From Macrostomum lignano (lineage: Eukaryota), in assembly GCA_002269645.1 (NCBI GenBank), contig NIVC01001368.1, forward strand, positions 124,001 through 188,000: 64,000 bases of DNA. The letters run 5' to 3'. The notes beneath the pieces are model-generated. The model did not search any database and was not told where the DNA came from. It saw only the letters and a program-made list of their open reading frames with translations. Numbering within the stretch: position 1 is the stretch's first letter; each line of letters opens with the position of its first letter. Shown piece after piece: positions 2,036-63,667 of the stretch. Both the position numbers and the translations under genes were made by a program.

Positions 2036-2196
2036 TATAAGCGAGGCATTTCGTTTCTGAGCATTCTGAGTAACCGACTGCAGATGTAGCTAACAGCTTA
2101 TGCAGCTCGCGAGTCGCTTAATTTGATCAGTTATTTTATCTGCTTGAGTCAGCTGGCCACCACAGGCCGTTACTGCGGAACCCCCATCCGTTCCGC

Positions 2197-7439: not shown

Positions 7440-8950
7440 GTCTCGCCGATTGAAGTTTGTTCAGTGTTTGACGCTGCCGCCGGAGATGCCGTTGCCGGCA
7501 GAGGAGAGCTTCAGCCTAGCACCAGTCAGCACAACCGACGTTGTGAGGCGATCGCCCAGCAATCACCGGGCGGGAAAGTGCTGCGTCTGGACGAGGTGCC
7601 CATCGAGGCGCTGCGCATCCACTGTGTGGCCAGTAAGATCGCCAGACTGATGAATCGCATGCTCTTCGGTGAGGAGGCACCCAACGAATGGACCACGGCG
7701 CACATCGTCGCAGTTCCTAAGAAGCCGGGCACCACGAGGCTTGAGGAGCATCAAGGTATCTGCCTTCAATTCTGCACTATCGCGATTGCAGCCCGTGCTG
7801 GATCCGTACCTGCGTCCTGAGCAGAACGGCTTCCGACCGCGGCACAGTGACGCAGATCTTCGGCGACTCATCGAGGAAGCACGCGGATACGCCAGTCGAT
7901 CCTGATTTTTGTCTTCTTAGATTTCAAGAAGGCATTCGACTCGGTCGACAGGTCTGTGCTCCCAAAGGTGCTCCGTGCGTACAACGTGCCACAGCAGCGG
8001 ATTTCCGCCATCATGGCGATGTACCGTGATAGGAAGCTGCTGTTTCAACACCCGATGGCCTATCGGACTTCTTTTTAGACATCGATCCTCCGGGGTGCTT
8101 CAGGGAGATACGCTGTTCGTTCTGGTGCTTGACTGGGTGCTGCAGACCGCTCTTCCTACTAACGACGACCCGCGGCTTTCTGTTGCGGTGACGCGTGGGT
8201 CTACGTTGGCTACGCCGACGACCTCGCCCTGCTGTCCTCAACTGTCGAGGGCGCCCAGCGACAACTGGACAAGCTAGTTGCTGTTGCGGCGAGTTTCGGC
8301 CTGCTGGTCAACACGCAGAAGACCGTCGTGCTCTGCGTGCCGGACGACATCGAGGCTGCGATTCCGGAGTCGCTGATGGACAGGCGACAGAGCTTCCGCG
8401 TTGTCAGCAGTTCGTCTACCTCGGCGGTCTGGTTCCGGCGTCCGCGAGGATTTGCAGCGTCGCCGCGTGCTTGCCTGGGTTGCTTTTCGTTCTGTGAGGG
8501 CAGTCCTGCAGTCTGAGGCCTTACCTGACCGCCAGAAGGCGGCGTTATTCCAGGCGGTGATCGAGACCGCGTCCTGCTGTACAACGCCGAGACCTGGACG
8601 CTGACGGAGTCGCTCGAGCAACAAGTTGATGCGGCGCACGCTGGCCTGCTGCGCGCCGCCTTCAAGATCGGCTACGAGCGAGTGACCAACGCGGCTTTTT
8701 ATCGCCGCGCCGGCCTGGTCCGTCCAAGCGACCTGTTGCGCCGTCGGCGACTCCAGCTGGCAGGCCACATCATCCGCGCCGAGTCGTACTGCCCAGAGTC
8801 GGTGCAGGAGGTGCTGCTGCTAACTCTGCAGGCACCCTACCGGCGGGGGCAGGCGCGCACTCGGCGTTTCGTCGACTGCCTGCTAGCTGACGCCGGCGCC
8901 CCGGATTCGGCCGGCGGCGCGTGGCGTTCTTTCGGGACCTGGCCTTGAAG
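7440..8950 (+). mobile_element. Degenerate 5'-truncated non-LTR retrotransposon (RTE-like RT), copy 1
   Basis: Frameshifted RT motifs: LDEVPIEALR, EWTTAHIVAVPKK, LRPEQNGFRP, LDFKKAFDSVDR, LQGDTL, YADDLALL, LLVNTQKT, FVYLGG. Homologous to 51445-52436. Confidence 0.88.
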
Positions 8951-9339
8951 CGCACCATGTGACGCTAACTGCGTATTCTGTTGTTGTATTGTCAGGGTTT
9001 GACGTACATGTACATGTATATAACGGTCAGCATTGACCAATGACAATCAAACAAAGAAGCTTGATCTTCTCTTTTGTGCTTTGATTGGAGGATATTCGAT
9101 CCCTTCGTTGTCCAGACCATGGACTGTGATTTTGGTGAGAGAATTGAAGTGAGTTATCCATGTCTCATAATCACCGGTGACAATGTGCTCGCTAAGTTCT
9201 CCCAGCCGAGCTTATCCGCACAGCCCAGGTTCGCTTGGCAAATCTCAAGCGGTTGTCTCATCAAAACCTCTGTTAGAAGTCGCGGGACCCAACGCGAACA
9301 CTGAGTTTCACCAGTCCCCATGCTGTCAACCATTCAGCC

Positions 9340-13836: not shown

Positions 13837-16800
13837 ATGCGGCACCAAAAAATTGTCTTTTTAGGCCTCTTCCTGCTCTGGCCAGTTGCTGGGGCGGCTC
13901 GACAAGCGGCTACCGTGCTCTGCATCATCTCTGACAAGGCTCCGTTCTCAGCCGACGCTGACTACTTCCGGTATGCTTTTGGCTACATCAACACTAACTT
14001 GAGCACCCTACTCTCCTTGCATGGATAAATCATGGATGAAGCATCCATGATGCCATGTATGGATCATACCTGAACATGTATGGAGCCATACCTGATCATA
14101 CATGGTTCCACGTAAACTTCATCCATGGTTACTTTCCATCCATGTACATTGATGTATGATTTTAAATATAATTTTCCTTACTACACTACTGTTAGTAGAA
14201 CGCAATGTTTGCGTAGGTTCATTTTAAAGCTGAAATTTTCTAAACAAATTCGGCAGCATCTTTAGTGCTGCTGAGAAATATGTTTCCATTCCCTTATAAA
14301 TCACTTTCAAAACAAAAAAGTATCAGAACAAATACTTATGCAATTAAATGTAGAAGTAATTGAAAACTCGTATGATGACCATTTCGAGACTTATATTATT
14401 AATGATAATTAGGCATAATTCATTTCAAAGTACTGTAAGAAAAAATAAGACAGCTCAGTCTCAGAGAGCTTTAAAATACAGAATGGACAGAATTTGACGC
14501 ATTTCAAGGTACTGTAAGAAAAAATAAGACAGCTCAGAGAGCTTTAAAATACAGAATAGACAGAATTTGACGCATTTCAAGGTACTGTAAGAAAAAATAA
14601 AACAGCTCAGAGAGCTTTAAAATACAGAATAGACAGAATTTTACGCATTTCAAGGTACTGTAAGAAAAAATAAAACAGCTCAGAGAGCTTTAAAATACAG
14701 AATAGACAGAATTTGACGCATTTCAAGGTACTGTAAGAAAAATAAAACAGCTCAGAGAGCTTTAAGATACAGAATAGACAGAATTTGACGCATTTCAAGG
14801 TACTGTAAGAAAAAATAAAACAGCTCAGAGAGCTTTAAGATACAGAATAGACAGAATTTGACGCATTTCAAGGTACTGTAAGAAAAAATAAAACAGTAAA
14901 TTTTACTGAACAGTCAATAAATAGAATTAGCCGAATTCGGTACGCATTAAGGGCAAGGGCCGACTAATCCTTTACGAAACGAAGTTAATGCTGCATTAGT
15001 CAATTATTTGCGCACAGAAACTTGGAGATTTTGAATATGGAGAGATCGGACAAAGAGAGGTAACGGTGGGAGTCTGAGAGGGAGGAAGTTGGGCATCTGG
15101 AAAGTTATTCTGATTCCCTGATGGTTTTATCTTGGTCATGGAGCATAATTTTATTTTCTGCCAGACTTTGCAGCATTAATAATAAAATAATCGGATCTAA
15201 GGTACGGACACATACTCGTACCTTTTTAATCATGTTCAAACTCTTTGAACAATGGCACAGCGCAATAACAGTCTTTGCTGAACGATTCTACTGGAACAGC
15301 GATGCAGGGTCGATCGACCTCTGAAAAATTAACTATACGTTCGCGTCTGGCCGATCTGGGCGCATTAGACAGGGATATCAATACAAAATTGAATGTCGAA
15401 GACTTTTTGAACATGGATTCCAGCAATGCTTTCCAATTAAGTAAATCGATGGGGAAAGTTGCTGCTGGTACTCGTAAAACAAAATCAAACAGCGAACCAA
15501 TGGGATCCAAAATTTGCACTCGAATAGTATTAGGCTCGAGGAACTCTGCAATAGTGCAGATTTCGCCGGACTTCAATTGGCAAAGATGGTTAGAATTTTT
15601 CGACGCACAAGCTGAGCTTGTCGAGAAAAAATGTCCATTAAAATAAGCAAGTGAGTTTCGAAGAATACCATGTGGCCTGGATGGCTCTAAAGATATAGAG
15701 TTAACTGCATCCACTACAATAGAGTCCTTAACACAAGAAAAGTAGTGATGTAGCAACTTTTGAAACAAAAACTTGCGAACAAGCTGTGGGCCAAATGACA
15801 CAGTTCCGCATAAGAACTTTTTGAACATGCCAATGGAGCTCTCAAATGCGAACATAGAATAATTAAATACAGGTCCGTACAATTCGTACTGTTCAGCCAT
15901 ATGCAAAAGCAGGTGGAAATTAAGGCGGAGTACTTTCGGTCCGAATATTTGCTGAGCATTGGAGATAAAAGCTTTGCATAGCTTTTCGATATCAGTCTTA
16001 TTTGATTGGGGGCTATACAACATGTGATAAATAAGAACTAAATTAGTTAACAGCAGTTTCAATGGAAAATGCGAAATTCTCTGCAAAAACGTAGGAAGAA
16101 GAAAGTATAGCGCAAAGTTTTTAAAATGCTTTGCTTTCCAATCTGAAAAGCCTTTAAAATTTGTGTTGATTGTGATGCTAGAAGGAGTTATAGATTGACG
16201 AATACAATTAGATATGAAATCCATGCAATTAGCTGAGCAAAAATACAACTCGCGCCTGTTTGCAGGTAATGACAGCTCTTCTAGTAGATACTTGGTGTGG
16301 CCTTCGAAAAAGCAGTGTAAACTGTCAATAGGATTGCAGCTGGGAAACGGAACATAGTCTAACAAGCAACTGCGCATCTTTACGCCAAAAACAGGCCGAT
16401 TTCGAATTTGTGCGAGCCGACAGTGTTCAAGATGGGAAGATGGGTTTCTCAAAGGAAACAAGTAGCCTTCACCATAGCGGAAGATCCAGTTTTTACCTTT
16501 CTCGGATACTTTAAAGCTCTCACCTGGGTGCAAGCACCTAGGACAGCTAAACGCACCATTGTACTGGTGAATGCAGAAGAGCTTAGCAAGAGCGGGCAAG
16601 TCACAAACAAAGAGTGTGTAATGGACATGAACGGTGTATTCCGAGAATATAAACTGTTTTGGCAAATTGTTCATAATTTCAGACAGAAAAGACTGGAAAT
16701 GCGGGACTGCCTTCGATGAAACAAGAGCAATTAGAATTAAATTTGCAAAGCGTTGACGGATGTAAACAGGAAGGTTTAGAAGTTGAGCCTGAAATGGCCA

Positions 16801-19800
16801 AAAGCTACTCTGAACAGATTCAAAAAAATTGGCGCCATCAGCTGAGATTAGAAGATGCAAGTGAAGCGACTTGCCAGAAGATAGGCTTAAGCCTTGTTCT
16901 TTAACTATTTTGGAATTCAAAACGTCTGTGTTTTTATCCTTTTGCAATTCTTGCTCATACTGCAGAATAGTTGAAGTGTGGCTGCTTAAGATAGTCCGCA
17001 GCTGTGGAACAATATTGAGCTGTGTCACAGCAACCTTTGACTTTGGGGAATGAACCTGACACTGGCTTTTGCATTCTGGGCAAAAGCCAAATTCAGACAC
17101 GTCACTATCATCAAGAGGGCAAGTATCTTGAATCAATGATTTGAGCAACTTGACGCTATTTGGAAGAGCTAGAGAATCTCTACTAAAAATAGAAAGTAGC
17201 TTCAGGAGTCTATCAAGAGCAGCCTCTGAAACTCCGGAAGTAATTGCCCACTGAAAAATCAGAGCCGCCTGCACACTGGGATCTGAGATGGAAGCCAAAT
17301 TCGCTAAGCTATCTGAACTCTCCTCAAGCACAGGCACAGCATTGTTTTCACCAATAAAAGTTTCCACAGCGTCAGGACAGCTGTGCGAGTGCGTTACACC
17401 GGCTTCGCTTGAAATTGAACTCCTATTACTTGTAGAAAAACTATTTGAGGGAGAAGAAATCGCCTGACAAGAGTAGGCTGAGTAATTAGTAGAAAGAGAG
17501 TGCTCAGATTCTGATTTACTAGACATAAAAATAGCAATTCAAATATTCAAAAGTTACTAGAATTTTTTCCGCAATTCACGGTCCCATTCGCCTTGAGCGG
17601 GAAATGGAATCCCCTGACTCGGGTCCAGAAGCAGCAGTTGAAGTTCGCTTTCTCGCCCGTGTCTCCTCCCTGGCCAGCTGATTGAGATGGTCTCGTACAG
17701 ACTTCCAGATTTCGTGGAAGTCGTAGCCAGATGTTCGATAGCACAATTGAAGCAAACCTGAAAATTCACGAGTATAGTAAAATATTTTTACAATAGACAT
17801 TGTGTACTGTGTTTATAGTAGAAATAGGCTAAATTTAAAAGGAAGTTGATTTATGATGCTAATCATTAAATAGGTCAATGGGATGTATTGAACTTTAGAA
17901 CTATTTTTCCTCAATTTCTTTTATCTCAGACCTAAATGTGTTTTTTTAGAAAATATCCCAAGTATTGGATTCAGATCATTTAGCATTAATTAGCCTAAAT
18001 TGCTTTATAATAAAAAAATTGCACAAAACTGTGAAAAAATTATATATATATATTTACGTTGAAACTCTGTCACATGCTCAGATGGAGCAGGCCTTCGGGA
18101 ACTGCGAGCACCACAGGATGAATCGATTATATGCTCAAGCAAGTAGCCTTCGCCAAATCGCAGCTTGATATACCTTCGGAGGAACACCTTAGGATCGTTG
18201 CAAAGAATTGAAGACAGCTCAGCTAGGGAACCATCAATGCACCTAAATTCCTAAAAAATGTTATTATATAGTAGAACTTTTATACTACAGACGTGATGCT
18301 GCTGATGCTAAGAAAAAACTGACATACCTCATTTTGGTATTCTTTAATTGTTAGCATTCCACCAAAGTTGTCATCCTTTTTTAAAAGTCGGCATATCCTT
18401 GCAGCAAGACGCTTCTCAAGAGAAAGCAACTCGGATTGAATGAACAGTTTTAGATCTAGAGTAAGATATATGCTCATATATAAAAATATGGTGATTTTGA
18501 TTTTTAATAATGTGATTGTATCATATTAAAAAAATAAAATTATACCTTTCATTGTTGCATCCGATTCACTGTTTACTATCTGTACCCCTCGGAGGGGTTG
18601 CACTTCTTGAATTGCACCTAGTGATAAAAAAGGCTTATTGCTACAAAAATATTGACTCATTTGGTATTTGGTTTTCAATTAGGTGTAATAGAATATACAA
18701 ACTTGATTCCAAGAGGCCTGTGGCACGAGCTTGCTCATTTTCAACCAAAGATGCCTCTCTCTCAAATGCAGAAATGGCTTTTTCTAAAAAATAATAATTA
18801 ATCAAATAATACAACAAAAAAAACAAATTGCAAACAATTAATAGTTCATATATATTGCAGTTTTACCCATTGATTGAGTAGCTGGTATCGCCAAATTTGG
18901 TTCGCCACTTTCACTATCCACTTCATAAAGCTCGTCAAGTAGTCCATGCTGATGACAACTAGAACTTGAAGCAACCTGCTTTGAACTAGATGACCTTATT
19001 GTCCTTACATTTGCAATGCCAGCTTGGGGATCTTTCATTGCAAAAAGCTCAATAGCTTGGCTAATCAATGAATCAGTATTTTCAGCCTCACTAACCAAGT
19101 TGGAAAGTTGGTTCATAGTTGAAGCCATTTGCCTTTCACTACCTTTTGCCACAAGTGTAGCAGAAAATAGTTTGCCATACATGCGTAAAAAGACTTTAGT
19201 CCCCTAAAATATAATTTAATAAAGTAATATTACATTTGTAGTTGGAATAATTTGTTTTAGAAACCATGTACTCAATAACAAAATATTATGCATATAAATC
19301 CAACTTAAAATCTTACTTGTGCAAGTTCCAACTTTTCATCATTAGTTATTGTACTTGGCCAATAGGGAGACCCAAATGCAATGGTCACATATTGCTCATC
19401 ATGGCCAACATTGTGAAGAATAAAGCAGAAAAACAATGCTGAATTGTCATTTCCAAATTTAGAAGTACTTTTTGTCTGCTTTCGAAGAGGCCTAGAATTA
19501 GATGCACTTAATCCAATATCATCCATAACAATTTGTTCTGAAAAAGTTTCACAAGGAGATAAGGTTTGAAGAATCAATCAAGAGGCCAATGACAAACCAA
19601 TTAGAATTGTATATAAAAAAAATTTAATGTAGGGACCCTAGGCCCCTATGATTTTAAATAAAAATTATAATATAAGGCCTAGGCCCTATATATAGGCCTA
19701 TAATTATAAAGTTGTGCCATTGTGGATTTTCTGATACAAAGTAGACAATATTAGGCCTAATTGGGCCTAGTCTAGTCTAGTTTTGATTATAGACTGTATA

Positions 19801-22800
19801 TTAGATACAAAGGACATGAAAGGTCTCGAAATTAAGTACCAATTACCATAATATACTATTATTTTTTATTATTTTGAAACTGTCAGCCTACCATGTGATT
19901 TTTATCATTAGGCTATGGCCTAGGTCTAGGATGCCACTTTAGACTAGGCCTTTGGCTTTGGTTAGGCCAACCTATCATTATAAAAATGCAGCAAAATATC
20001 ATTCAAAAATATACATCTAACCCCTATAGGTTATCTTTGCATCCCAAATATAATATATAATAGGGTTTCTATTTTCTAATATATCTACAAATACAATTTT
20101 CACTGAAGGAGTGAAGATCAAAATTAGCATGTCAAAAAACCTTACAAGCCACCGAATTTTAAAACTAGCTACCAAAAGTGGAACTGGAAGTATATAGCTA
20201 AGAAAAAACATAAACATAAACATAGCACATAGTGACACATAATGAAATGATGACAACATGCAAGAGTGACAGAGTCCTCTTAGAAAGGAAAAATAGGCCT
20301 AGTAATTTATGTTTATGGGAAGTTAAGTCCGTAATTAACTAAACCGAAACAAAATGGCCAACAAAATTGCTGGTAATATATTCAAAGCAATTTGTAGGTG
20401 AAGATTTTAACAAATTTATTAAACTATTTTTTGTATTTACAATTTCGCTTTTATTAAATATATTTAAAACTTTATTAGATATACATAAAATAGCCTGAAA
20501 TTTTTTATAAGCTTAGTTATTTATTTTCCCGTATGAACTCCCTGACATGGATGATTTTACCATGGAAAGTTTTAAAAATCCATGCATGAAAATACCATGA
20601 ACATGCATGATTTATCAATGGATCATGGATCATAGATGATTTATCCATGATAAGAGAGTAGGGCAGCCTGTTTCCCGAGGTGCAGTTCAACTACCAGCAA
20701 ATTGTGACTGACGGGGTGAGAATCCCGCTATTCTACCTGCATGACTATTCATACTGTAAAGACTTCACTTTAGATTGTAGAACGAAAATTTGGGGGGGGG
20801 GGTGCTTGCTATCTGGACAGATTGCAGAAACAGGTAAAAACACCACCCCCAAACACTGAATAAAGTACAAGCTAACATCACTAACAAAAATCAACCCAGC
20901 CAAGTCACCACACTAATATTAGAAATGGCGAAATTTCAATGCGAACTCCGCACCGCAGGACAAGCTCGGCAGCGCGGCCAAGGCTCTGTTCGATGGCTAC
21001 CTGAGCCCGCCCAACAAAGCTCTGCTCCTCGGACCGGCCTTCTCCCAGCAGGCGCAGATCGTGGCCGACATCGCCCAGTTCTACTACCTGCCGCAGGTGA
21101 CTGCAGGGACGGCAGTCAAACAATTGTTGACGCCTTGATAGTATAGAAACTCCCCTATCAGAACATCGAGTTATTTAACTCAGTTCCACTACAAGGTCCA
21201 AAGAAGGAGTGAAAATAAATCTCTGCTGTGTGTGGGCTCAGGGCCATAGACACCTGGGAACCACCACAGTAAGTTTATTTTATAAAGTAGAGCAGAGCAG
21301 AATTTAAAGAAAGCCAAGAGGCCTAGAAGACGCTTGGCGTGAGCGCTCTGAAATATATCACTATTTTCCATTGGGTATTGTATAATTAAATTGATGCAAA
21401 ATGTGGGTATTATAAAAAGAAATAATGCCATTATATAAAATTAATTATGAGTACAAAACTCTCGCAATCGTCTGACAACAACCGAATGACTCCGTCTCCT
21501 TAGTGCATACATAACAGTGGCGTCGCAAGCTTTTGGACTTAGTCAACTTGCGAGATATGTCGAAGTCACCAGGAAAAGTACCTGGTAAGACACCAGTGAA
21601 GTCTCCAGTGAAGATGCCAGCAATAGCTCCGAGCATGCTCTCACAGGATGCGACTTTGTCGAACCAAAGCAGCCGTCCAACGTCGGGAATGGCCGAAATA
21701 GAGCGATTGGACGAGAACTCTAGCCTGGAGCGATGGATGGATCGCTTCGAGATCGCGTCGAAGTTCTTCAACTGGAGCGCGACCGACAAGGCTCAGGTGC
21801 TGCTTTTGAGACTCGCACCGCAGCTGTTTGAAAAACTGGCGGACTATCTGGCGCCCAAAAAGCCTGGAGATAAGATATTCGACGAGCTGAAAACAGCGCT
21901 GGAGGATATAATGCTGCCCAAAACGTACGTCCTTGCCGAAAGATTCAATTTTCAAAGTATAAGACGAGAACCAAACGAAACAGTGCGAGTGTTCTCCGAG
22001 CGATTGATCAAAGCGGCAGAAAAGTGTGAGTTTCAAAACAAGGACGAAAGACTGCGTGATCAGTTCATTTGCGGCCTAAACAACCAAGGCATTATTGGGA
22101 AGCTCATCGTCAAAGATCACAAGAAGCTCAGTTTTAAGGACGCAGCTAGCGAAGCAGAAGCGCATGCAAGTCTGTTGGAGACTCCTATTATGAAGAGTGC
22201 ACCAAAAACTGATGCTGGGTCCATCTTAAAGGTCGATTTATCGAAGCCTAGAACCGTCGAAAAGAAGAGCAATCGGACTCACGGAAAGGGTCTCGAGAAG
22301 GCGTGTCAAAAGTGTGGACGCGCACATGCCAGGATGCAGTGCCCAGCGTTTGGGAAAATTTGTAATAAGTGCGGTAAGCCTAATCATTTTGCGAAGGTCT
22401 GCAGAAATGGTGAGAGTAAAAGCAGGACATCAGGCGGAAATTCTGTACAACATGTAGCTGGGAGTGGAAACATTTTCGCGGCGGAAGCCCGAAGGTGTTG
22501 TCAGCGACAGCAGCCTCGAGAGCCGATTGCTATCACGGTGAAGATTCTCGAAGCAAACAGAGGGCATCCCATCCGTTGCGAGCTCGATACGGGAGCTGGA
22601 GTGTCGATCTTGTCAGAAGCCTTGTGGAACCAACTTGGTCGCCCAACTCTAAGACCTTCGGAAGTAAAGCTGGGAGGCTATGCGAGTGACCATACGTTTC
22701 AGGTATTGGGAAGGTATGAAGCGACTGTTGATATCGAAGGCGAATTTCGGACAATCAATTTTGAAGTTGTGAAAGGGAACAAGAGCTACGCTCTTCTTGG

Positions 22801-25800
22801 AAGGGACGTGCTTTGTGTCCATTTGGAATCAAGTCAGGCTGTGGGAGAGGCGGCACCTTGTGCATCTATGAAAGCGCATCTAGAGTTAAAGGCGGGCGCG
22901 ACACCGGAGCACATAAAGGCAAGGCCGTTGCCTTTTGCCCAACGTGAAGCTGTTCAGAGAGAGATAGATCGATTGCTCCAGGAGGGAATCATAGAGCCTG
23001 TACGTTTCGCAGAGTGGGCATCGCCTATTGTGGTCGTGCCGAAACAACGTGGAGGAATTCGGCTTTGCGTGGATTACAAAAGGACTCTAAACCCGCAATT
23101 GGTACCTGACAGCTACCCGATGCCGACTCCGGAAGAGGCGTTTTCAGTAGTATCTGGCTGCAAGCGATACACGCTGCTCGACTTGGAGAAAGCCTACAAT
23201 CAAATCGAGCTGGATGCCGGATCAAAGCCGCTAACAGTGATGTCAACACCATTTGGGAATTACCAATATAACAGACTAGTGTGCGGGATAAAAACGGCGC
23301 CGTCCATTTTCCAAAGATATATCTCAGAAGTAATTCAGGGAATTAATGGATCTATAGCCTACATAGATGATGTGTTGATCGGTGGAAAGGATGAGGACGA
23401 GCTGTTGTCAAGAGAGGAGGAGGTTCTGCAGCGGCTGGAAGCAGAGGGACTGCGTGTAAATAAGGAGAAGTGCCAGCGGAATCAAAGCAGGATTCGGTTT
23501 TTGGGCCACATACTCGACAACGGCAACATTTACCCAGACGAAGAAAAAGTTCGTGCAATTAAAGACATGGAAGCGCCTAAAAACCTGGCTGAGCTAGAAT
23601 AATTCCTGGGATTAGTGGCATTTTGCTCGCGGTTCATTCAGAATTTAGGTGACCTGACTGCTCCGCTGATGCAGCTGAAGCAAAAAAATGTACCCTTCGA
23701 GTGGGGACCGAAACAGAGCAAGGCGCTGGAAAACCTCAAAGCTTCAATATCTAGAGATGCGCAGCTAACGGCCTATGATCCAGATCGGCCTGTGGAGCTC
23801 GAGGTCGATGCTTCGCAGAAGGCCCTGGGAGGAATTCTGAGCCAGGAGGGTCGTCCAGTGCTCTACATCAGCAAAATATTGTCGAAGGCTGAGCGAAACT
23901 ACTCGCAGATAGAACGTGAGGCGTTGGCCATAGTTTGGGGTGTTCGCAGATGCCATCGATTCTTGTGTGGCAGGAAGTTTACGCTGGTTACCGACCACAA
24001 ACCGCTGGTTTACATATTTGCCGTGGACAGCGAGCTACCTGCTCGTGTTTCAGCGAGATTGCAGCGTTGGTCGATTTTGCTTACGGCGTATGACTACGAA
24101 ATCAAATATCGAAACACCAAGGCGATGTCATCAGATGCGTTGTCCAGACTAGTATCGCAGCATAAGAGTGAAGCAACTTTGGAGATTGGAAATGTAAATT
24201 CTTTCTGCACGCTGTTGCCAACTGAAGAGATTGTAAAAGCAACTCGAGAATGCAACGAGATGCAGCGCTTGTTGAGTGCTGCATCTCGTTGCATTAGATG
24301 CATAGATCAGATCAGGAAGTTTCAAGTCACCGAAGCTACGAGCCTTCAAGCCGGTCCGAGATGAGCTCACAGTACAAGACGGTCTAATTCTTCGAGGTCA
24401 TAGAGTAGGGATACCTCGATCATTGCGTTGTAAGACGATCGGAGTGGTTCACCAAGCACACCTGGGAATAGTCAAATCTAAATCTCTGGCAAGAACTGAG
24501 CTCTGGTGGCCAGCGATGGACAAAGACTTGGAGAAAACCATTAGCAAGTGCCGGGTATGCCGATCAGCCAAACCACAAAATAGAGATTTTCGGACGCCCT
24601 GGCCGCAGGCTGCTGGGCCATGGCAGCGAGTTTATGCAGATTTTGCAGGACCAATTCAGAAACAGTACATCTTGGTGCTGGTAGACGCATACACTGGTTA
24701 CCCAGAGATTTACATCGTTAATGACATGAAGTCGACCACAGTAATAGAGCGTCTCCGTCGAACGTTTTCCCAGTTCGGAGTACCACAAACTTTGGTTACC
24801 GACAACGGGCCGAGCTTTATGAGTTCTGAATTGAACCAGTGGCTCACGGAAATCGACTGCGAGCATCTTACTACGCCAGCATATCATCCGCAAAGCAACG
24901 GTGCGGCTGAACGGCTGGTAAGAACTGTGAAGGAGACAATAGAAGCAAACGGGTTCAGTCAGAAGACGATTGACCGTTTTTTTTGTTTTATCGAGCGTCG
25001 GCTGGCAGAAACGGTGTTTCACCTGCAGAGCAAATGTTTGCGAGAAGGATTCGGGTGCCGTTCACTGCTAGGCAGGTCGGTCTCGAGGAGCAGGTGATTT
25101 ACAAGAACTTCCGAGATGCTGCGGTTCCGGCAAGAATTGTGCTACCGCTAGGAAGGAGCATGGCGCTCATCAAGACTGAGGAACAGAAGCCAGTCTACCG
25201 GAGGGCTCATCTGGATCAACTGAGGCCATGCACTGACTCTGATCAACAGCCTGGAGGGCAAACGGATCAGACGGCAGAGCAGTCCGATATCGACCAGCTG
25301 CCCAAGTCCGGGGAAGAGGGAGAGCCGGAGGACAAAGAGCATCTCCCACCGGAGGATCAAGGCCAGCCACGGCGCAGCTACCGACTGGCGCTAAAGCCAC
25401 GAGTTGACTATAGATGCTGATGTTGGCTTGCATTGTCTATTCACTAACTTGCGCTACCCATTGTAAGGGGGAAGGTGCTGTGTGTGGGCTCAGTGGGCTC
25501 AGGGAACCACCACAGTAAGTTTATTTTATAAAGTAGAGCAGAGCAGAATTTAAAGAAAGCCAAGAGGCCTAGAAGACGCTTGGCGTGAGCGCTCTGAAAT
25601 ATATGAGTACAAAACTCTCGCAATCGTCTGACAACAACCGAATGACTCCGTCTCCTTAGTGCATACATAACAATCTCGAATGACACAACTACAGAGTACG
25701 GATTGGGGCATCATCCATTGACACGAAAAAATAGCGGCAGGGTTGGTGGGGCGTTTCTCAAAACCATGAATTTCTAGGTTGGCTACTCAAAATAGTTCAA

Positions 25801-28800
25801 TCAAATGCGATTTTTCGATTGTCTGAAGCGCAATGATGCCTGTGACCTTATGGTTTTGCTAAAAATGATGCTTACGACAGGTTTTTTGGAAGAACTTTTC
25901 GTAACCTGAGCTGTCAAAGCGCTGGATTCGATTACAGCTTGAATCTTAGGCACATCGTATAGATATTAGCAAGTACTGACTTTCCAGCCTCAGGCAATCC
26001 TTGGTGTGCTAGAAGCAATAGTAAAATCGTATACCTCGTGAAGCTATAGTAAAATGAATAGGCCGTCACCTACGTCTCCGTCTCTCAAATAGGCCGTCAT
26101 CGGCTCCGTCTCTCAAATAGGCCGTCATCGGCTTCGTCTTTCAAATAGGCCGTCACCCATGCCTCCGTCTCACGAATAGGCTATCGCTCTTACCTCCTAG
26201 TGATGGCTGCAAAGGACAGCAGATGTTGCCAGTTGATTCTCGGTGAAGGGCAGCCCACGATTTTGATGGGGACCCGCAGATTGGCTACTCGAACACGATG
26301 CCGGAGCTGAGCGTGAAGTCCCAGTATCCCTACTTTGTCCGGCTGCCCACCAGCCCGAGCCAGTTCGTGCAGCCGGCGATCGAGCTTCTGCTGAGGTACC
26401 GCTGGAGCAGATTTGCACTGCTCACCACCGACTCGGAGACGGTCTACCATGTGAGTAACTTACTGCAGAATGCGGGTGCTGGATTTACCGCGGCAGAATA
26501 TTCCATGCAGTTGCTTTTGCCTTATCTGTCACTGGGACGATCATATTGCTACCCAAAGTCAGTTAATCGACCATTTTACTCGTATTTAACTTGAAATCAA
26601 TTCAACATGAATGCAGCTGTGTGAGCAGGAACTGAGACTGAGTGATTGAGCTGCCGTGAATAAACCCCCGCAGACGTCCCAGGAGCTGGAGACCGCGCTC
26701 CAACGAAGAAACCTCACCAACTACCGGAAAGCGATTTACGGCCGCGATGCAACTGAGGTGATCGCCAGCTCGCTGGTACGGCTGGGGTTTTTAATTGCAA
26801 CTTGATTCTCTGACGATTTTGCTCACGAACTGCAGCTCGAACCATTTCGCCCTTTTTTCAGCGCAACAACTATCGAGTTTTCGTGGTCGTTCGCGATGCT
26901 TCCGATGAGCTTCCCAGCAAGCGGCTCGAATGCATTGTAATTCTGGCTTGCAGTTTGACTTAATGAGGAACTGGGAGTAGCTAGGAATTGCTCAAGGGAT
27001 TTTTATGATAAGTTAACGTGGCTTTTCAATTCACATCAGAGAGATTCGAAGATGACAATGGCTGGTCTTCAGAAAAAATCGGCTTCAACTGGAACTGTTA
27101 GGCCTCTTCACCTGGAAGCTTAACGAATACGAGCTAGAAACTTATAGAGATTTATCGTTCGATGACTCAATAAATGACTGACTCGTGCACAATATTGAAA
27201 TTTTTCTCTGAAGCCAATCCAGACATTTTTTCGTTCGAAATTGAGGTGCTCGTCGGAACCAAGGCACGGAGCACGGGGTATGAGGTTTCGAGGTACCCAC
27301 GTTAATTAAATATCAAGGGGCTCATGAAAAATGTAATATTTTATTCTGGGCATAATCTTTTAGTGGTGACCTGGAAGTTTTTCGAGTATTAAATAATTCA
27401 CAGATTTCTATTTACCCCGAGCAAAACATTTTGGTTCCATGCGGAAACAAATGTTAAAATTTCAAATTTCCAATTTCGAAAAAAAATTTGTCGTGACGCA
27501 ATACTTGTGCCAAAATAGCATCTCGCTTAGAGCTTTTTCGGGCTCCTTGGCTCCATGTGAAAGGATCCCTGTGAAAAATACCTGAGCCAGGATTAGCGCT
27601 TCATTCCATTCATTCTTCTGTGATGAGAGCACATTGTGCGGTAGTCTTGTCAAAGTAACTGCCTCGATGGCACAAACCCTGCAGATTTACAGCCTCAGGG
27701 CCTACGGCATGAAGTACTTCTGGATTCAATTGGGATTTCCGGACTCTGCCACAGCGTCGTCGCAGGACAGCTGCACCGACTCGGAGCGGGCCCGGAGCCT
27801 TGAGGGCGCCGTGGAGTTCGACACGCCCGTCGTGGAGCCCGGCCTGCCGGAGGCCCGGGTGGGCATCGCTGGCAAGGTGAGGCTCAGATGAGCAGCCATA
27901 TTGACTGATTTATTCTTAATATAGAGTCAAAGCGTCCGGTACGCGAATTGCTGATCTCAAAGATAAAGCCAAACACTTTTTGTTGCTGAAGTCTTATTGG
28001 AAGTTGAATTTTGTTTCAAAATTTCACAGGACTTTTGTTCAGGTCCTGTTCGAAAGCCCGAAAATAATCGCCTCCCTGCTCCCCATCAGCTGCTTCTGGT
28101 CGGCTCACAAAAACTATAAAGATCAAAAGAGATGGCAAATTATTGAAGGTTCTAATAAAGACTTACTTGACCTTCAATGTTGTTCAACCTTGGTGAGTGT
28201 GAGCTTCAGAGAGGGTTTACCGGCTAGAAAGTACATCATGTTCCCAATCTGCAGACGCTGGGCCAGTTGTACGCCGACTTCCTGGCCTCCAGACCGGCCG
28301 GGGCGAGCGCCACCCCGATAAAGTCGGTCTCCGGCTTCGACCTGCGCTTCGACGCCGCGATGGCGGCCGCTCTGGCTTTGAATTCCAGCCTGCAGACGGA
28401 GGCCTTCCAGGCCAGCCCACAGCTGGCGAACTCCAGCTTCAAGGCCCGCCTGTTCCGCAGCCTGCTGTCGCTGGACTTTCTCGGACTGTCAGTGAGCGAA
28501 AGACCAAGGGGCATTCCGTTCCTTTGATTTCACTTGTGGCGGGTTAAATGCCAAGGAGCAAAAAAAATCATTACTGGATGCCTTGGAACAAATCCTGATA
28601 TTTCATTGTTGTAAAGGTTGTAAAGGTTTCAGAGCACCTTCTGACTGATGCGCCATTTTATTTTACATCCTAGACGATTAATTTTGGTGCACCAGAAAGA
28701 CACCTGTATTACTAACTTCTTCCGGTACTGCTTCAACACAGGAAATACTACTTGTGCTTGCATTATTCTCTACCATTTACACAGTGCAGCTGGGATACCA

Positions 28801-31800
28801 CAAAGGCTGTTTTATACACAAGCGAAGCAGACCTTACATTGGCCAAAAAAACTGGATCGTCTAACAACATCCCGTCTACACCAATCCTCTCAGGGTCCAG
28901 TGAGGTTTGACCGGCGAGGGGACAGGCTGTCTCAAATTCGATTTTATCAGCTCAAAAGTGAGAACTGTTATTTTTGCTGCTATTTGCCACTGTAGGCTGT
29001 GTACCAAGTAGCAAGTAGGGAGCTAAAATATCTGCAATCCTATTTGCCACTGTGGGCTGTGTACCAAGTAGCAAGTGGGGAGCTAAAATATCTGCAATCC
29101 TATTTGTCACAGTGGGCTGTGTACCAAGTAGCAAGTAGGGAGCTAAAATATCTGCAATCCTATTTGCCACTGTGGGCTGTGTACCAAGTAGCAAGTGGGG
29201 AGCTAAAATATCTGCAATCCTATTTGTCACAGTGGGCTGTGTACCAAGTAGCAAGTGGGGAGCTAAAATATCTGCAATCCTATTTGCCACTGTAGGCTGT
29301 GTACCAAGTAGCAAGTGGGGAGCTAAAATATCTGCAATCCTATTTGCCACTGTGGGCTGTGTACCAAGTAGCAAGTGGGGAGCTAAAATATCTGCAATCC
29401 TATTTGCCACTGTGGGCTGTGTACCAAGTAGCAAGTGGGGAGCTAAAATATCTGCAATCCTATTTGTCACAGACCTCAAAAGAAACCTGGTTGCAACATT
29501 TGACCCAACTGAAGGCAACGTCACTTGGCTTGAGGACCTGTGGTTCATCGGTGAGTTTCCTCTGGTTGGGGTGGCCGAGTATCACCTAATCAATACGTAA
29601 AGTCTAGCTCGTTTAATACATTATTTTCAATTTTAGCTCATAATTTATTCTGTTGGAAATTCAGTCTGCTCGTTTGCTGAAAAGGCGATCTGCATCGAGA
29701 GAAGAGGTGCCGATTTCACTGATCCTGAGCGCAAGCACGCGCATAAATAACTCATCCCCCTTGCAGTCTGAATCACGCACGCGCCAGTCTGAAGCGCAGA
29801 TTTGCTGCCATGCACCCGCTAAGTCTAATGGGACGCGTTGTCCGCCACACCTTTTTGACCCCTCCGTTTTCAATTCGCTGCAGTAGATGCTGCAGAAATT
29901 CACGTGCTGCCAAAAAGATTCGCATGCACTTTGCTTTCAAGAGTCCCATTCTGGCCCTCAATCCAGGCGGTCAGCCCCCATTGGACACCCCAGAAGTGAT
30001 CATTGAGGACATCAGGCTCAGCCTTCCCGCCACGACTGCCATCGCGTCAATCTCATCGCTGGGCATGGCTCTGTCCGTGGCGGCGGTCGCTGTGAACGTT
30101 CACTACAGGGAGCTGCGCCTCATCAAGATGAGCAGCCCGCTGGTGAACAATGTGATTGGCGCTGGCTGCCTTATGTGCTACGCCTCCTGCATAGTGATGG
30201 CCGCGAACTCGCACTGGTCTGTGAGCACCGCCCTGTGCTGGGCGCAGACGGCCCTGCTGACCCTCGGCTACTCCGCCGCCTTCGGCGCCATGCTGGCTAA
30301 AACCTGGTGGGTGCACCGCATCTTTGCGAACCTCAAGCTGCGCAAAGCGGTAAGTCAAGTTGCTTGAGCCCGACTGGGTAAATCTGAGATACCAAAAATT
30401 CCCGTTTACTTTTTGCGTGCAGCCCGTGCAGAGCCGGTACCTGCTGCTCTTCATCGTGGTGGTGGTGGTCGCTGACATTGTGCTCCTAGCACTGTGGGCC
30501 GGCCTGGACCCGTTGGCTTTGCAAGCTAGCGAGTATCTTGTTGAGGTGAGAATTGTACGAGTAATTTTGCATTGTAGCTCGTATATTGGAACCTTTGTTG
30601 CTGCGCTGAAGTGTGATCAGCTTCACGTCAGGTTGCACTTCCGTTATTTTCGGACTTAGGAAAGTGACCAAAAATTTTGAGCTTATAAAAGGGACTGAGT
30701 TTCGAGCAGGTGAAACGTCCGGTGTGCAAAAGGCTAGCACCACTGGTGGCGAAAATTTCACACTTTCCAGGAGCGATCGGACGGGTCAACTCTGAGCGCC
30801 AGAATTCTGCTGTGCGCCAGCCGCAACCAAGCCGTCTGGCTGGGCGCCGAATTCGGAAAAAAGGGTGAGCTCACTGTCTCCGTGAAATCCTGCGCTGCTG
30901 CAGGCCATATAACATCATCCATCGAAACTATCTGCAGATTTTTATCAGGTGGATGTCGAGCCTGGGTCTAGGGGCGTTGGGACGCACAGAGTAGAGCCTG
31001 GGACTAGAGGCGCTGGGACACACAGAGTAGAGCCTGGGTCTAGGGGCGTTGGGATGCACAGAGTAGAGCCTGGGTCTAGAGGCGTTGGGACGCACTGAGT
31101 AGAGCCTGGGTCTAGAGGCGTTGGGACGCACTGAGTAGAGCCTGGGTCTAGAGGCGTTGGGACGCACTGAGTAGAGCCTGGATCTAGAGGCGTTGGGACG
31201 CACTGAGTAGAGCCTGAGACTAGAGGCGTTGGGACGCAATGAGTAGAGCCTGGGTCTAGGGGCGTTGGGATGCACAGAGTAGAGCCTGGGTCTAGAGGCG
31301 TTGGGACGCACTGAGTAGAGCCTGGGTCTAGAGGCGTTGGGACGCACTGAGTAGAGCCTGGGTCTAGAGGCGTTGGGACGCACTGAGTAGAGCCTGGATC
31401 TAGAGGCGTTGGGACGCACTGAGTAGAGCCTGAGACTAGAGGCGTTGGGACGCAATGAGTAGAGCCTGGGACTAGAGGCGCTGAGACGCACTGAGTAGAG
31501 CCTGAGACTAGAGGCGCTGGGACGCAATGAGTAGAGCCTGGGACTAGAGGCGTTGGGACGCACTGAGTAGAGCCTGAGACTAGAGGCGTTGGGACGCACT
31601 GAGTAGAGCCTGAGACTAGAGGCGCTGAGACGCACTGAGTAGAGCCTGAGACTAGAGGCGTTGGGACGCACTGAGTAGAGCCTGAGACTAGAGGCGTTGG
31701 GACGCAATGAGTAGAGCCTGGGACTAGAGGCGTTGAGACGCACTGAGTAGAGCCTGGGTCTAGAGGCGTTGGGACGCACTGAGTAGAGCCTGGATCTAGA

Positions 31801-34187
31801 GGCGTTGGGACGCACTGAGTAGAGCCTGGATCTAGAGGCGTTGGGACGCACTGAGTAGAGCCTGAGACTAGAGGCGTTGAGACGCAATGAGTAGAGCCTG
31901 GGACTAGAGGCGCTGAGACGCACTGAGTAGAGCCTGAGACTAGAGGCGTTGGGACGCACTGAGTAGAGCCTGGGACTAGAGGCGTTGGGACGCACTGAGT
32001 AGAGCCTGGGACTAGAGGCGTTGGGACGCAATGAGTAGAGCCTGGGACTAGAGGCGTTGAGACGCACTGAGTAGAGCCTGGGTCTAGAGGCGTTGAGACG
32101 CACTGAGTAGAGCCTGGGTCTAGAGGCGTTGGGACGCACTGAGTAGAGCCTGGATCTAGAGGCGTTGGGACGCACTGAGTAGAGCCTGGATCTAGAGGCG
32201 TTGGGACGCACTGAGTAGAGCCTGAGACTAGAGGCGCTGGGACGCACTGAGTAGAGCCTGAGACTAGAGGCGTTGGGATGCACAGAGTAGAGCCTGGGCC
32301 TAGGGGCCGTTGGGACGCACAAAGTAGAGCCTGGGCCTAGAGGCGCTGGGAACCGCCATGGACCTTATGAGTACAGTTACGAGTATGGCAGCTACTGTAG
32401 ATCTCGAATGTCTCAAGCGTAGGACGCACTGACGATACTCACTACTATAGATATATGAGTAAATGAAGGTCAGGCCTATAGTAGCGGGTCTGGCAATCCC
32501 GAAAGATTTTTCGCGTGTTTGCGGCCAAGGTAGAGCAAAAAATTCTGAATTCGCGATACAAGCCGAGGTTAGCGGGAGAGGCCAGCCAGACGGAGAAATA
32601 AATGGGTCCATGAGGTCCATGGTCCGCCAATTGCCCGCAGACGAGTTGCCCGTCGAGATTTGCCCGCAGTGCAATTTGCCCTCGAGTGAATTGCCCGCGA
32701 GCGAATTGCCCACTGAGTTTTTTCCCGCCGAGGATTGCCCGCAATGCTTTTTTTCCAGCAGCGCATTTGGCAGCTATAGCTTCTGTCTGCATTGCCCCCC
32801 CCCCAAAAAAAAATATGCATTTGATATGCAGTTACTATCAAAACGTTTTGATCGGGTAAATCTCTTTATTAAGACCTACAAAGCATTGGGGAGACAATGC
32901 AGACAAAATCTGCCGCGTGGCTAAATGCGCAACTGCTTATTGCTTGACGTACACCGCTGAGATTAGGAGCCAGGATCGATGTTATCGAATGAAGTTTCAA
33001 AAACTGGGTGCTCCAAATACCACCAAAAATGCATAGAGCTCTTCGCCGGATGAACCGCAGGGATTCTCCTGTTCGCTGCCATCATCTTCGCCTGGGAGAC
33101 TCGCACCGTGCAGCTGGATGCCGTCAACGACTCAAAGAAGATCGGAGTCTGTGTGTACAACACCACCGTGCTGGCGCTCATCGGGGTCGTCGTGGCCTTC
33201 GTGCTGCCCGACTCCAGCTATGAGCTGCGGCTGATTCTTGTCGCCATTTGCACCTGCGGCTGCGCCACCATCACGCTGGCCCTGGTGTTCGGCACGAAGG
33301 TGAGCTGCCCCGCCCGTGGCACCTGGGGCTCTGCTTCTCTGGGGTGCTTGCTTTATACCTAGAAGAGAATCCCCTTAGTCCCCCTCCCGCTAGTCTGTTG
33401 TTAATCCATCTGTAGCCGATGTATCTCAACCCCCTCCCCGCTAGTCTGTTGTTAATCCATCTGCAGCCGATGTATCTCAACCCCCCTCCCCGCTAGTCTG
33501 TTGTTAATCCATCTGCAGCCGATGTATCTCAACCCCCCTCCCCGCTAGTCTGTTGTTAATTCATCTGCAGCCGATGTATCTCAACCCCCCTCCCCGCTAG
33601 TCTGTTGTTAATCCATCTGCAGCCGATGTATCTCAACCCCCCTCCCCGCTAGTATGTTGTTAATCCATCTGCAGCCGATGTATCGCAACCCCCCTCCCCG
33701 CTAGTCTGTTTTTAACTCATCTGCAGCCGATGTATCGCAATTCCCCTCCCCGCTAGTCTGTTGTTAATTCATCTGCAGCCGATGTATCGCAATTCCCCTC
33801 CCCGCTAGTCTGTTGTTAATTCATCTGCAGCCGATGTATCGCAATTCCCCTCCCCGCTAGTCTGTTGTTAATTCATCTGCAGCCGATGTATCGCAATTCC
33901 CCTCCCCGCTAGTCTGTTGTTAATTCATCTGCAGCCGATGTATCGCAATTCCCCTCCCCGCTAGTCTGTTGTTAATTCATCTGCAGCCGATGTATCGCAA
34001 TTCCCCTCCCCGCTAGTCTGTTGTTAATTCATCTGCAGCCGATGTATCGCAACCCCCCTCCCAGGTGCACGCCATCTGGCGCCTCAGGCCCAACCGCATC
34101 GATGCCCAAGAGGCTCTGGAGACGGTGGACGGCCAGACCTCAAAGGCCAACACCGCCGGGTCGACGAGTGCGGCCGACACTTGCTAA
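13837..34187 (+). CDS. Class C GPCR, GABA-B receptor-like (signal peptide, Venus flytrap, 7TM, no cysteine-rich domain), 14 exons, 745 aa reconstructed; exon 1 interrupted by a DNA transposon
   Basis: Exons 13837-14005+20666-20715, 20959-21096, 26280-26450, 26674-26775, 26862-26936, 27685-27876, 28255-28491, 28894-28957, 29473-29550, 29967-30349, 30423-30545, 30771-30864, 33061-33299, 34065-34187 (2238 bp, no internal stop, phases consistent). Motifs QYPYFVR, YRWSR, GMKYFWI, GPVRF, GQPPLD, IKMSSPLVNN, FGAMLAKTW, FAWETR, NDSKKIG. Orthology to GABBR1/2/3 cannot be assigned by eye. Confidence 0.92.
14006..14032 (+). repeat. Left TIR of the CMC element
   Basis: ccctactctccttgcatggataaatca; imperfect inverted match to 20637-20663. 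Confidence 0.9.
14420..14897. repeat. 73-bp tandem repeat (~6.5 copies) inside the CMC element, downstream of the transposase
   Basis: Unit aaggtactgtaagaaaaaataaaacagctcagagagctttaaaatacagaatagacagaatttgacgcatttc with starts at 14506, 14579, 14652, 14725, 14797, 14870. Confidence 0.96.
15226..17526 (-). CDS. EnSpm/CACTA TNP2-like DDE transposase, 766 aa, intact ORF
   Basis: Motifs ISADGANF, SFWPF, LNLP, FVCDLPALAK, YNGAFSCPRCLHPG, GVK, IDSLHCFFEG, SDWKAKHF, LNFHLLLH, LYGPV..YSMFAFES; typical of the Transposase_21 family. Confidence 0.92.
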   Translation of the reverse strand: MSSKSESEHSLSTNYSAYSCQAISSPSNSFSTSNRSSISSEAGVTHSHSCPDAVETFIGENNAVPVLEESSDSLANLASISDPSVQAALIFQWAITSGVSEAALDRLLKLLSIFSRDSLALPNSVKLLKSLIQDTCPLDDSDVSEFGFCPECKSQCQVHSPKSKVAVTQLNIVPQLRTILSSHTSTILQYEQELQKDKNTDVLNSKIVKEQGLSLSSGKSLHLHLLISADGANFFESVQSSFWPFQAQLLNLPVYIRQRFANLILIALVSSKAVPHFQSFLSEIMNNLPKQFIFSEYTVHVHYTLFVCDLPALAKLFCIHQYNGAFSCPRCLHPGESFKVSEKGKNWIFRYGEGYLFPLRNPSSHLEHCRLAQIRNRPVFGVKMRSCLLDYVPFPSCNPIDSLHCFFEGHTKYLLEELSLPANRRELYFCSANCMDFISNCIRQSITPSSITINTNFKGFSDWKAKHFKNFALYFLLPTFLQRISHFPLKLLLTNLVLIYHMLYSPQSNKTDIEKLCKAFISNAQQIFGPKVLRLNFHLLLHMAEQYELYGPVFNYSMFAFESSIGMFKKFLCGTVSFGPQLVRKFLFQKLLHHYFSCVKDSIVVDAVNSISLEPSRPHGILRNSLAYFNGHFFSTSSACASKNSNHLCQLKSGEICTIAEFLEPNTIRVQILDPIGSLFDFVLRVPAATFPIDLLNWKALLESMFKKSSTFNFVLISLSNAPRSARRERIVNFSEVDRPCIAVPVESFSKDCYCAVPLFKEFEHD
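17576..19526 (-). CDS. Spliced accessory gene of the CMC element (7 exons, ~400 aa), C-terminal BEN-like helical region
   Basis: Exons 19317-19526, 18867-19203, 18703-18783, 18546-18617, 18328-18455, 18058-18250, 17576-17757 join with GT-AG and matching phases into a stop-free 1203-bp frame. The start codon and the BEN call (FHEIWKSVRDHLNQLAREE) are inferences. Confidence 0.78.
20637..20663 (-). repeat. Right TIR of the CMC element
   Basis: ...tgatttatccatgataagagagtaggg followed by TSD ca. Confidence 0.9.
21224..25672 (+). mobile_element. Ty3/Gypsy (Mag-like) LTR retrotransposon in GPCR intron 2, structurally complete, coding-defective
   Basis: LTRs 21224-21516 and 25476-25672 (TG...CA), 5-bp TSD ATCTC (21219-21223, 25673-25677), PBS-like gTGGCGTC after the 5' LTR, PPT aagggggaagg before the 3' LTR. 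Confidence 0.96.
21533..25420 (+). pseudogene. gag-pol of the Gypsy element (two CCHC knuckles, protease, RT, RNase H, integrase)
   Basis: CQKCGRAHARMQC/CNKCGKPNHFAKVC, ELDTGAG, YIDD, EVDAS, IEREALA, TDHKPL, HQAHLGI..CRVC, YADFAGP, VTDNGP, SNGAAER. In-frame TAA at 23600-23602 (ELE*FLGL) and frameshifts near 24340 and 24980. Confidence 0.94.
26057..26182. repeat. 28-31-bp tandem repeat (~4.5 copies)
   Basis: Unit aaataggccgtcatcggctccgtctctc. Confidence 0.9.
28981..29472. repeat. 60-bp minisatellite (8 copies plus a partial) filling GPCR intron 8 and ending at the acceptor
   Basis: Unit tatttgccactgtgggctgtgtaccaagtagcaagtggggagctaaaatatctgcaatcc; the final partial unit tatttgtcacAG is the 3' splice site. 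Confidence 0.98.
30958..32350. repeat. 36-bp minisatellite (~38 copies) in GPCR intron 12
   Basis: Unit gagtagagcctgggtctagaggcgttgggacgcact with variants. Confidence 0.98.
32628..32745. repeat. Degenerate ~15-bp repeat (aattgcccgc core), probably part of a non-autonomous DNA element
   Basis: About 8 copies of (g/a)a(a/t)ttgccc(g/a)c; element ends not found. Confidence 0.6.
33380..34064. repeat. 52-bp minisatellite (~13 copies) filling GPCR intron 13 and ending at the acceptor
   Basis: Unit ccccctccccgctagtctgttgttaatccatctgcagccgatgtatctcaac; last unit ends cccccctcccAG at 34064. Confidence 0.97.
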
Positions 34188-41277: not shown

Positions 41278-43787
<2,510 letters not shown>

Positions 43788-52514: not shown

Positions 52515-52702
52515 ACTACTATGGACTGCAAAATCCGCCCCTTTTTGGAGGTGGGGTGGGTGTCAACCCTCCTCGCCTCTCATTGGCTGGCCTTACTTGA
52601 CTTAGCTGCAGGGGGCGTCCGGCGGATGCAGCGAGGAGGCGGAGGAGACCGCCCATTCCGCTAGCCCCTGGCGACCAACGACTTCCGTTGAAGTGGTGTC
52701 GC

Positions 52703-63661: not shown

Positions 63662-63667
63662 TAAAAG

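Follow-up and report, generated by a model that had tools for sequence, protein, structure and literature searches.

An intact Mirage/TRC-type transposon interrupting exon 1 of a GABA-B-like receptor gene of Macrostomum lignano: probable recent inactivation of one of three copies

Plant En/Spm insertions give rise to unstable, suppressible alleles. In the flatworm Macrostomum lignano (line DV1) a complete DNA transposon lies within the first coding exon of a G protein-coupled receptor (GPCR) gene, which raises the question of whether an animal gene could carry a mutable allele of this kind. The window that we analysed is the whole 64-kb stretch of bases 124001-188000 of contig NIVC01001368.1 (assembly GCA_002269645.1, Mlig_3_7). 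The original prediction for this locus described an EnSpm-type element, recently inserted into an otherwise perfect gene, whose excision might restore the receptor. We consider it highly probable that the insertion is recent and that it leaves a null copy, one of three in the genome; this assessment excludes mutability, which is weighed separately below. The coordinates of all features are given in Table 1.

At the left junction (14005/14006) the sequence runs ...AACTTGAGCA and then enters the element as CCCTACTCTCCTTGCATGGATAAAT..., and at the right junction (20663/20664) the element ends ...ATTTATCCATGATAAGAGAGTAGGG and is followed by CAGCCTGTTT.... The dinucleotide CA is found on both flanks (14004-14005 and 20664-20665). 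The terminal inverted repeats (TIRs) are 39 nt long and imperfect (82% complementary), with a perfect outer 10 nt (CCCTACTCTC). A 25-nt degenerate pattern describing these ends matched two sites in the window, both of them the ends of the element, where no match is expected by chance. Read unmodified from the ATG at 13837, the frame passes from ...NTNLS into TLLSLHG and stops at 14026-14028, giving a product of 63 amino acids (aa). Joining 14005 to 20666, which deletes the element and one CA, yields ...NTNLSSLFPEVQFNYQQIVTDG followed by the GTGAGA donor, and the uninterrupted exon reads TTGAGCAGCCTG over the site. Excision leaving both CA copies would shift the frame. The restored junction, INTNLSSLFPEVQF, aligns without a gap to INGNLSHLFPRFEL in an M. 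lignano paralog. The join therefore restores the ancestral reading and gives separate confirmation of the 2-bp duplication. The rejoined exon 1 with its GT donor, the 63-aa signal-peptide product ending at 14028 and the frame arithmetic (a retained duplication of +2 shifting the frame, loss of one CA restoring it) had all been predicted and are borne out here.

The rest of the receptor gene was modelled with M. lignano paralogs (about 55% identical) as guides, by enumerating in-frame GT-AG junctions. With the element and one CA removed the gene has 14 exons and a coding sequence of 2,274 nt encoding 757 aa. The 13 exons beyond exon 1 are all stop-free, as had been claimed, and joined by GT-AG introns, and junction lengths equal those of the paralogs at every intron, residue for residue. 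In the restored protein a signal peptide is followed by an ANF_receptor domain (residues 45-409) and then by a 7tm_3 domain (455-717). Among solved structures GABA-B2 (6e-84) and GABA-B1 (5e-70) are the best relatives, matched over nearly the full length. The predicted receptor is a class C GPCR and GABA-B-like. As in the GABA-B subunits (e.g. PDB 6uo8 chain B), the Venus-flytrap module (ANF_receptor) is joined directly to 7tm_3, with no cysteine-rich linker; in contrast, the tail after the seventh transmembrane helix is about 40 aa, too short to hold a long coiled coil like that in the tails of the vertebrate subunits. Moreover, the receptor is one of a lineage-specific family, several M. lignano paralogs being about 55% identical to it, and it is termed GABA-B-like on the basis of sequence.

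The introns of this gene are rich in repeats. The gypsy-like long terminal repeat (LTR) retrotransposon of intron 2 has LTR segments at 21256-21363 and 25502-25609 that are 98% identical, and open reading frames (ORFs) at 21515-23599, 23603-24361 and 24306-25094. These place gag-protease-reverse transcriptase, RNase H and integrase in three separate frames, leaving pol broken. Tandem arrays occupy 28980-29470 (60 bp x 8), 30958-32351 (36 bp x 39) and 33380-34062 (52 bp x 13). The last of these ends 2 nt before the exon 14 acceptor, whose polypyrimidine tract and AG are supplied by a repeat unit.

Two more copies of the locus, on NIVC01003920.1 and NIVC01004002.1, were found through the neighbouring dihydrolipoyl dehydrogenase cluster. 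The 10-kb flanks that we compared begin at window-equivalent positions 31,945 and 29,820 respectively, both 3′ of exon 1. NIVC01003920.1 is 98-99.7% identical to the window over 31.9-50.3 kb, and its exons 13 and 14 are identical to those of the window. NIVC01004002.1 is more diverged, at about 93-96% overall and 93-99% in exons 11-14 (97-99% in exons 11-13), and the frame is preserved. Over exons 11-13 (279 codons) this diverged copy gives a synonymous divergence (dS) of 0.083, a nonsynonymous divergence (dN) of 0.005 and a dN/dS of 0.06. The receptor family has been under purifying selection, and the window copy was probably functional until recently. Because neither contig is among the 8 that encode the transposase, and the 90% cluster of the transposase holds one member sequence, the two further copies are probably without the insertion. 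DV1 is a neopolyploid with three paralogous subgenomes that differ by 1.4-2.4% in single nucleotide polymorphisms and mostly by long indels (PMC10733133). Nearly every locus, this one among them, occurs there as three paralogs. Since the insertion would inactivate one of three copies of the locus, the loss is likely to be buffered.

The element appears to be autonomous and is intact. In it the motif CATGNAT/ATNCATG occurs 8 times in each terminal 160 bp against 3 times in the 6.3-kb interior, an enrichment of more than 100-fold. Besides the transposase the element carries a second ORF on the same strand, with its stop 50 nt before the transposase ATG, which we joined from conserved blocks via canonical splice sites. 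Its six peptide blocks are conserved at 50-84% aa identity in two M. lignano sister families (L012 on NIVC01000023.1 and L013 on NIVC01000758.1). The transposases of these families are 62-63% identical to that of the window and of equal length, the two-ORF layout is the same and the ends read CCCTAGACTCC[A/T]ATCATGGAT; the group therefore appears to have diversified in M. lignano. Sequence searches of Pfam and PDB with the second ORF returned nothing above chance. From its position and by analogy with TnpA of En/Spm, it may be a candidate TnpA-like factor that binds the subterminal repeats.

The age of the insertion can be judged from the other copies of the element. An identical 766-aa transposase is encoded on 8 contigs of the assembly. 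One of them, NIVC01001368.1, corresponds to the window, being 100% identical over the element with matching flanks, and a second locus bears out the coordinate offset. Six copies are complete (that of the window and 5 others) and have identical terminal bases, and all six (6/6) are flanked by a 2-bp duplication (in transposase orientation TG, TA, TA, TC, TA and TG). Since six complete copies share their exact end bases, each with its own duplication, the boundaries and the 2-bp duplication are far beyond chance. The copies are 99.7-100% identical in DNA and differ chiefly in the count of 73-bp units. When all 8 were aligned, every substitution outside the 73-bp array was a singleton and none was private to the window copy, which there equals the family consensus. 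The lack of a private change argues that the insertion is very recent, and the pattern as a whole is the signature left when a single source has given rise to a burst very recently. An intact transposase gene and a precise, recent insertion had both been part of the original prediction; the six-exon second ORF, the gypsy-like element in intron 2 and the three copies of the locus go beyond it.

Nested insertions or truncations were observed in 3/8 copies. Such changes in copies that are otherwise near-identical indicate that several transposon families are very active at present. Copy L005 holds a nested 2,296-bp insertion (1533-3828) with a 6-bp duplication AGGCCT, copy L001 a nested insertion of at least 3.3 kb (1-3356) with a 9-bp duplication, and copy L004 lacks its 5′ part (upstream of 4812).

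Taken together, these data are best explained by the insertion of a two-gene, autonomous, cut-and-paste element of the CMC (CACTA/Mirage/Chapaev) superfamily at a CA within exon 1, in antisense orientation relative to the receptor gene. Its DDE transposase would cut at the CCCTA ends and integrate at a TN/NA dinucleotide, where its cut would be staggered by 2 bp. The receptor product would be cut to the signal peptide and a few residues, and the disrupted copy is most likely null. Buffered by the two others, such a null copy could become fixed by drift within an inbred line. As an event the insertion is ordinary in a transposon-rich, recently polyploid genome.

Whether the allele is mutable is a further question. 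At the sequence level the prerequisite is present, in that both ends are intact and the eight transposase ORFs are identical and intact; because of this, reversion by excision is mechanistically possible and a mutable allele is a reasonable proposition. We infer that the family may still be transposing and that its transposase could excise the window copy. Excision would be carried out by the DDE transposase, perhaps with help from the second ORF, whose product might bind the subterminal repeats in the manner of En/Spm TnpA. The receptor would be restored only if the footprint were a net 3n, for instance when the element is lost precisely together with one CA. We rate detectable excision of the window copy as unlikely. 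That the family is currently mobile in laboratory M. lignano and that the interrupted copy excises measurably in soma or germline is, as a joint claim, quite doubtful.

The same anatomy would equally describe a stable knock-out, in which the family has been silenced (e.g. by PIWI-interacting RNAs) or this copy cannot be excised, leaving a fixed null of one of three copies. This would be a sub-case of the recent insertion of a CMC element proposed above and competes only with its mutable extension; we give it somewhat better than an even chance. The nested insertions in 3/8 copies imply that copies persist in place, and in Daphnia mutation-accumulation lines one CMC-EnSpm loss event only was recorded, which suggests low excision rates for CMC-EnSpm in animals. 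However, the ORF is intact and identical in all eight copies and their ends are intact too, the transposase is annotated in a transcript-based annotation, and the star-like differences among copies indicate a burst so recent that activity may continue.

Several points weigh against our interpretation as a whole. Polymorphism and mobility of the window copy are both hypothetical. The near-identity of the copies may be slightly overstated, as long-read consensus polishing can homogenise repeats. An AlphaFold model of the transposase, built from 5 sequences, has a mean predicted local distance difference test (pLDDT) of 39 and a predicted TM-score (pTM) of 0.26, and is too poor to confirm an RNase H-like fold independently. 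The GPCR is unannotated in the GenBank record of the contig, and a near-identical GPCR protein, as from an annotated allele or homeolog, was not found in the protein collection, where the best match was a 55% paralog. Finally, the LTR element in intron 2 could have impaired this receptor copy before the transposon came.

The last two of these points lead to a second alternative, that of an old insertion in a decaying pseudogene, already non-functional before the transposon arrived. The missing annotation and the lack of any transcript-derived protein found for the gene agree with it, as do the intron 2 retrotransposon with its 98%-identical LTRs and the relaxed selection that comes with neopolyploid redundancy. 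Against this, no stop interrupts the other 13 exons, whose splice sites are canonical; the comparison with the diverged copy gives a dN/dS of 0.06; exons 13-14 do not differ from those of the closest copy; and the element copy has no private substitution. We therefore regard a prior pseudogene as improbable, and retain the recent insertion into a copy that was probably functional.

Leaky splicing is known for some maize Ds/dSpm alleles, and cryptic splicing might likewise remove the element from the pre-mRNA so that some receptor is made. One in-frame cryptic pair was identified, a donor CCG/GTATGC after 13970 and an acceptor GGGCAG/CC before 20667, the use of which would cost 12 residues of the ligand-binding domain. 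However, the donor is weak, the tract at the acceptor is rich in purines and lacks a polypyrimidine run, and the intron would be 6.7 kb long with antisense genes inside it, making such an allele very improbable. Least probable of all is a chimeric long-read join in what is a difficult, repeat-rich and redundant assembly, since the join is precise to the base, shows a 2-bp duplication like those of the other complete copies and, on removal of the element, restores a frame aligning gap-free to a paralog, which a chimeric join would not yield.

For the biology of the receptor the recent insertion into one of three copies adds little, as it concerns a lineage-specific GABA-B-like family member whose disruption is buffered. 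It does offer a concrete case of three subgenome copies diverging by transposon insertion, as happens genome-wide (PMC10733133), and implies that 'one gene' in M. lignano may be two intact copies and one disrupted. The element itself may be of wider use. To our knowledge, animal CMC/Mirage-type elements have been described almost only as sequence. With eight essentially identical two-gene copies, clean duplications, a fresh hit in an exon and a host with injectable embryos, this family lends itself well to a first functional study of such elements, which could also cover the role of the second ORF and of the CATGGAT subterminal repeats. Were measurable excision found, this would be the first demonstrated mutable allele from a CMC/Mirage-type element in an animal, and the element would be a natively active two-gene transposon and a potential tool for genetics in a flatworm amenable to transgenesis, the second ORF (ORF1 in order) being a candidate end-binding factor.

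Table 1. Features of the interrupted receptor gene and of the inserted element (window coordinates).
Feature	Coordinates	Strand	Remarks
GPCR exon 1 part a	13837..14005	+	ATG, signal peptide, start of ligand-binding domain; last 2 bases CA = left target-site copy
Complete Mirage/TRC-type CMC DNA transposon	14006..20663	-	6,658 bp; element genes antisense to GPCR
TIR, transposase 3′ side	14006..14044	.	starts CCCTACTCTC
Subterminal zone	14006..14165	.	8 copies CATGNAT/ATNCATG
Internal tandem array	14421..14896	.	73-bp unit x 6.5; copy number varies among genomic copies
Transposase ORF	15226..17526	-	766 aa, single exon; D230, D309, E562, C328xxC331, L403-H404, H538xxxH542
Second ORF	17576..19526	-	376 aa, 6 exons: 19317-19526, 18867-19203, 18703-18783, 18328-18455, 18058-18250, 17576-17757
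Subterminal zone (8 motif copies) and TIR 20625-20663, transposase 5′ side	20504..20663	.	
Right copy of 2-bp target-site duplication (CA)	20664..20665	.	
GPCR exon 1 part b	20666..20715	+	ends at GTGAGA donor
GPCR exon 2	20923..21096	+	
GPCR intron 2	21097..26279	+	nearly filled by sense gypsy-like LTR retrotransposon; pol split over three frames
GPCR exons 3-10, ANF_receptor domain	26280..29550	+	26280-26450, 26674-26775, 26862-26936, 27685-27876, 28255-28491, 28894-28957, 29473-29550
GPCR exons 11-14, seven-transmembrane domain and short tail	29967..34187	+	29967-30349, 30423-30545, 30771-30864, 33061-33299, 34065-34187 incl. TAA

Other genes also lie in the window. Upstream of the receptor at 2200-6679 (-) is a TRIC-B (TMEM38) gene, for which 20 candidate hand-built models were compared by exact match. 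The 303-aa model that equals UniRef A0A1I8FW95 uses an exon at 4402-4483 and skips a second version of the exon at about 3427-3521, in which the RGVWLP motif is better conserved and which may have arisen by duplication or be used in a mutually exclusive way. A model with a micro-exon as exon 4 was rejected, the alternative model having matched UniRef, and a representative search with one TRIC-B exon gave only relatives of at most 56% identity. Downstream are a fibronectin type-II domain membrane protein at 36566-39362 (+; BOX15_Mlig031717g1, a single annotated copy) and the dihydrolipoyl dehydrogenase at 41278-43766 (-; BOX15_Mlig013073g1), of which the assembly has three copies. Other repeats comprise remains of retroelements, namely a 1,037-aa ORF of non-LTR type with reverse transcriptase (RT) and RNase H at 52522-55632 (-) and, upstream of the receptor gene at 7341-8945 and 9277-11868 (+), RT and gag-like ORFs with frameshifts, as well as one short-period repeat (translated ...VHLYWESVHLYWES...) found at 58106-58882 and 63145-63680 in inverted orientation, about 4 kb apart.

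Lastly, we consider to which family the element belongs. The CMC group is defined by a DDE triad with C(2)C, LH and H(3-4)H motifs (PMC12730594, PMC4079192), and its target-site duplications range over 2-5 bp (PMC12730594). The transposase has this signature, with H(3)H, at the residues listed in Table 1, all of which are invariant over five relatives down to 33% identity, and the 2-bp duplication in 6/6 complete copies falls within the range. The 5′-CA...TG-3′ termini of most CMC members are absent; the ends are CCCTAC...GTAGGG, as in the CCC variant of animal TRC elements. In Pfam the transposase matches DUF1258 at 54.9 bits (cut-off 33.1), a family that the sister transposases match too, whereas Transposase_21/tnp2 stays below threshold (17.7 bits against 28.6, E 0.002) and DUF4218 is likewise sub-threshold. 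A direct search of PDB with the transposase gave no matches. DUF1258 corresponds to Mirage and clusters with the CACTA tnp2 family (PMC3985635). Repbase has folded Mirage and Chapaev into EnSpm, and CMC elements are there labelled EnSpm/CACTA. The sequence features thus place the element as a Mirage/TRC-type member of CMC, and the 'EnSpm-type' of the original prediction is right at the superfamily level only: the superfamily motifs are present, whereas strict En/Spm is contradicted by CCCTA in place of CACTA, a 2-bp in place of a 3-bp duplication and DUF1258 as best match with Transposase_21 sub-threshold. Its placement follows the DUF1258 match, and the element may lie either inside the Mirage clade or beside it.

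Mutable alleles in animals are represented by the medaka Tol2/Tol1 albino alleles and Drosophila mariner white-peach. They share with the M. lignano locus an autonomous DNA transposon in a host-gene exon for which somatic or germline reversion is possible. However, those elements belong to the hAT and Tc1/mariner superfamilies and their mosaicism is visible and demonstrated; ours is a CMC element in one of three gene copies, and its excision is a conjecture. Maize En/Spm shares the DDE transposase with C(2)C and H(3-4)H, short subterminal repeats, two coding regions in one orientation and insertion into a coding exon that could revert by excision. In contrast, its CACTA ends and 3-bp duplication are absent here, and the second ORF of our element has no detectable similarity to any family. 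In maize, TnpA and TnpD arise by alternative splicing of one transcript. Moreover, instability and suppression of En/Spm alleles are genetic observations, whereas the M. lignano element and its layout have been read from sequence.

Closer counterparts are found among animal elements. Mirage elements likewise make a 2-bp target duplication, and those of Caenorhabditis have a DUF1258 transposase as does ours, the host here being a flatworm. SmTRC1 of Schistosoma mansoni and the Tribolium and Aedes TRC (transposon related to CACTA) elements have CCC ends, a 2-bp duplication and internal tandem repeats (DeMarco et al. 2006, PMC1636069). The M. lignano element differs from SmTRC1 in its imperfect 39-nt TIR with short subterminal CATGGAT repeats in place of a perfect 54-bp TIR, in having DUF1258 and not Transposase_21 as best Pfam match, in the separate six-exon ORF ahead of the single-exon transposase ORF and in carrying a duplication in 6/6 copies against 7/14. 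It nevertheless agrees with this group in its flatworm or animal host, in CCC-starting TIRs (CCCTAG... in Tribolium, CCCTAC... in our element and CCCTAGACTCC in the sister families), in the 2-bp duplication, in a tnp2-related DDE transposase, in a block of internal tandem repeats near one end and in a length of about 5-9 kb.

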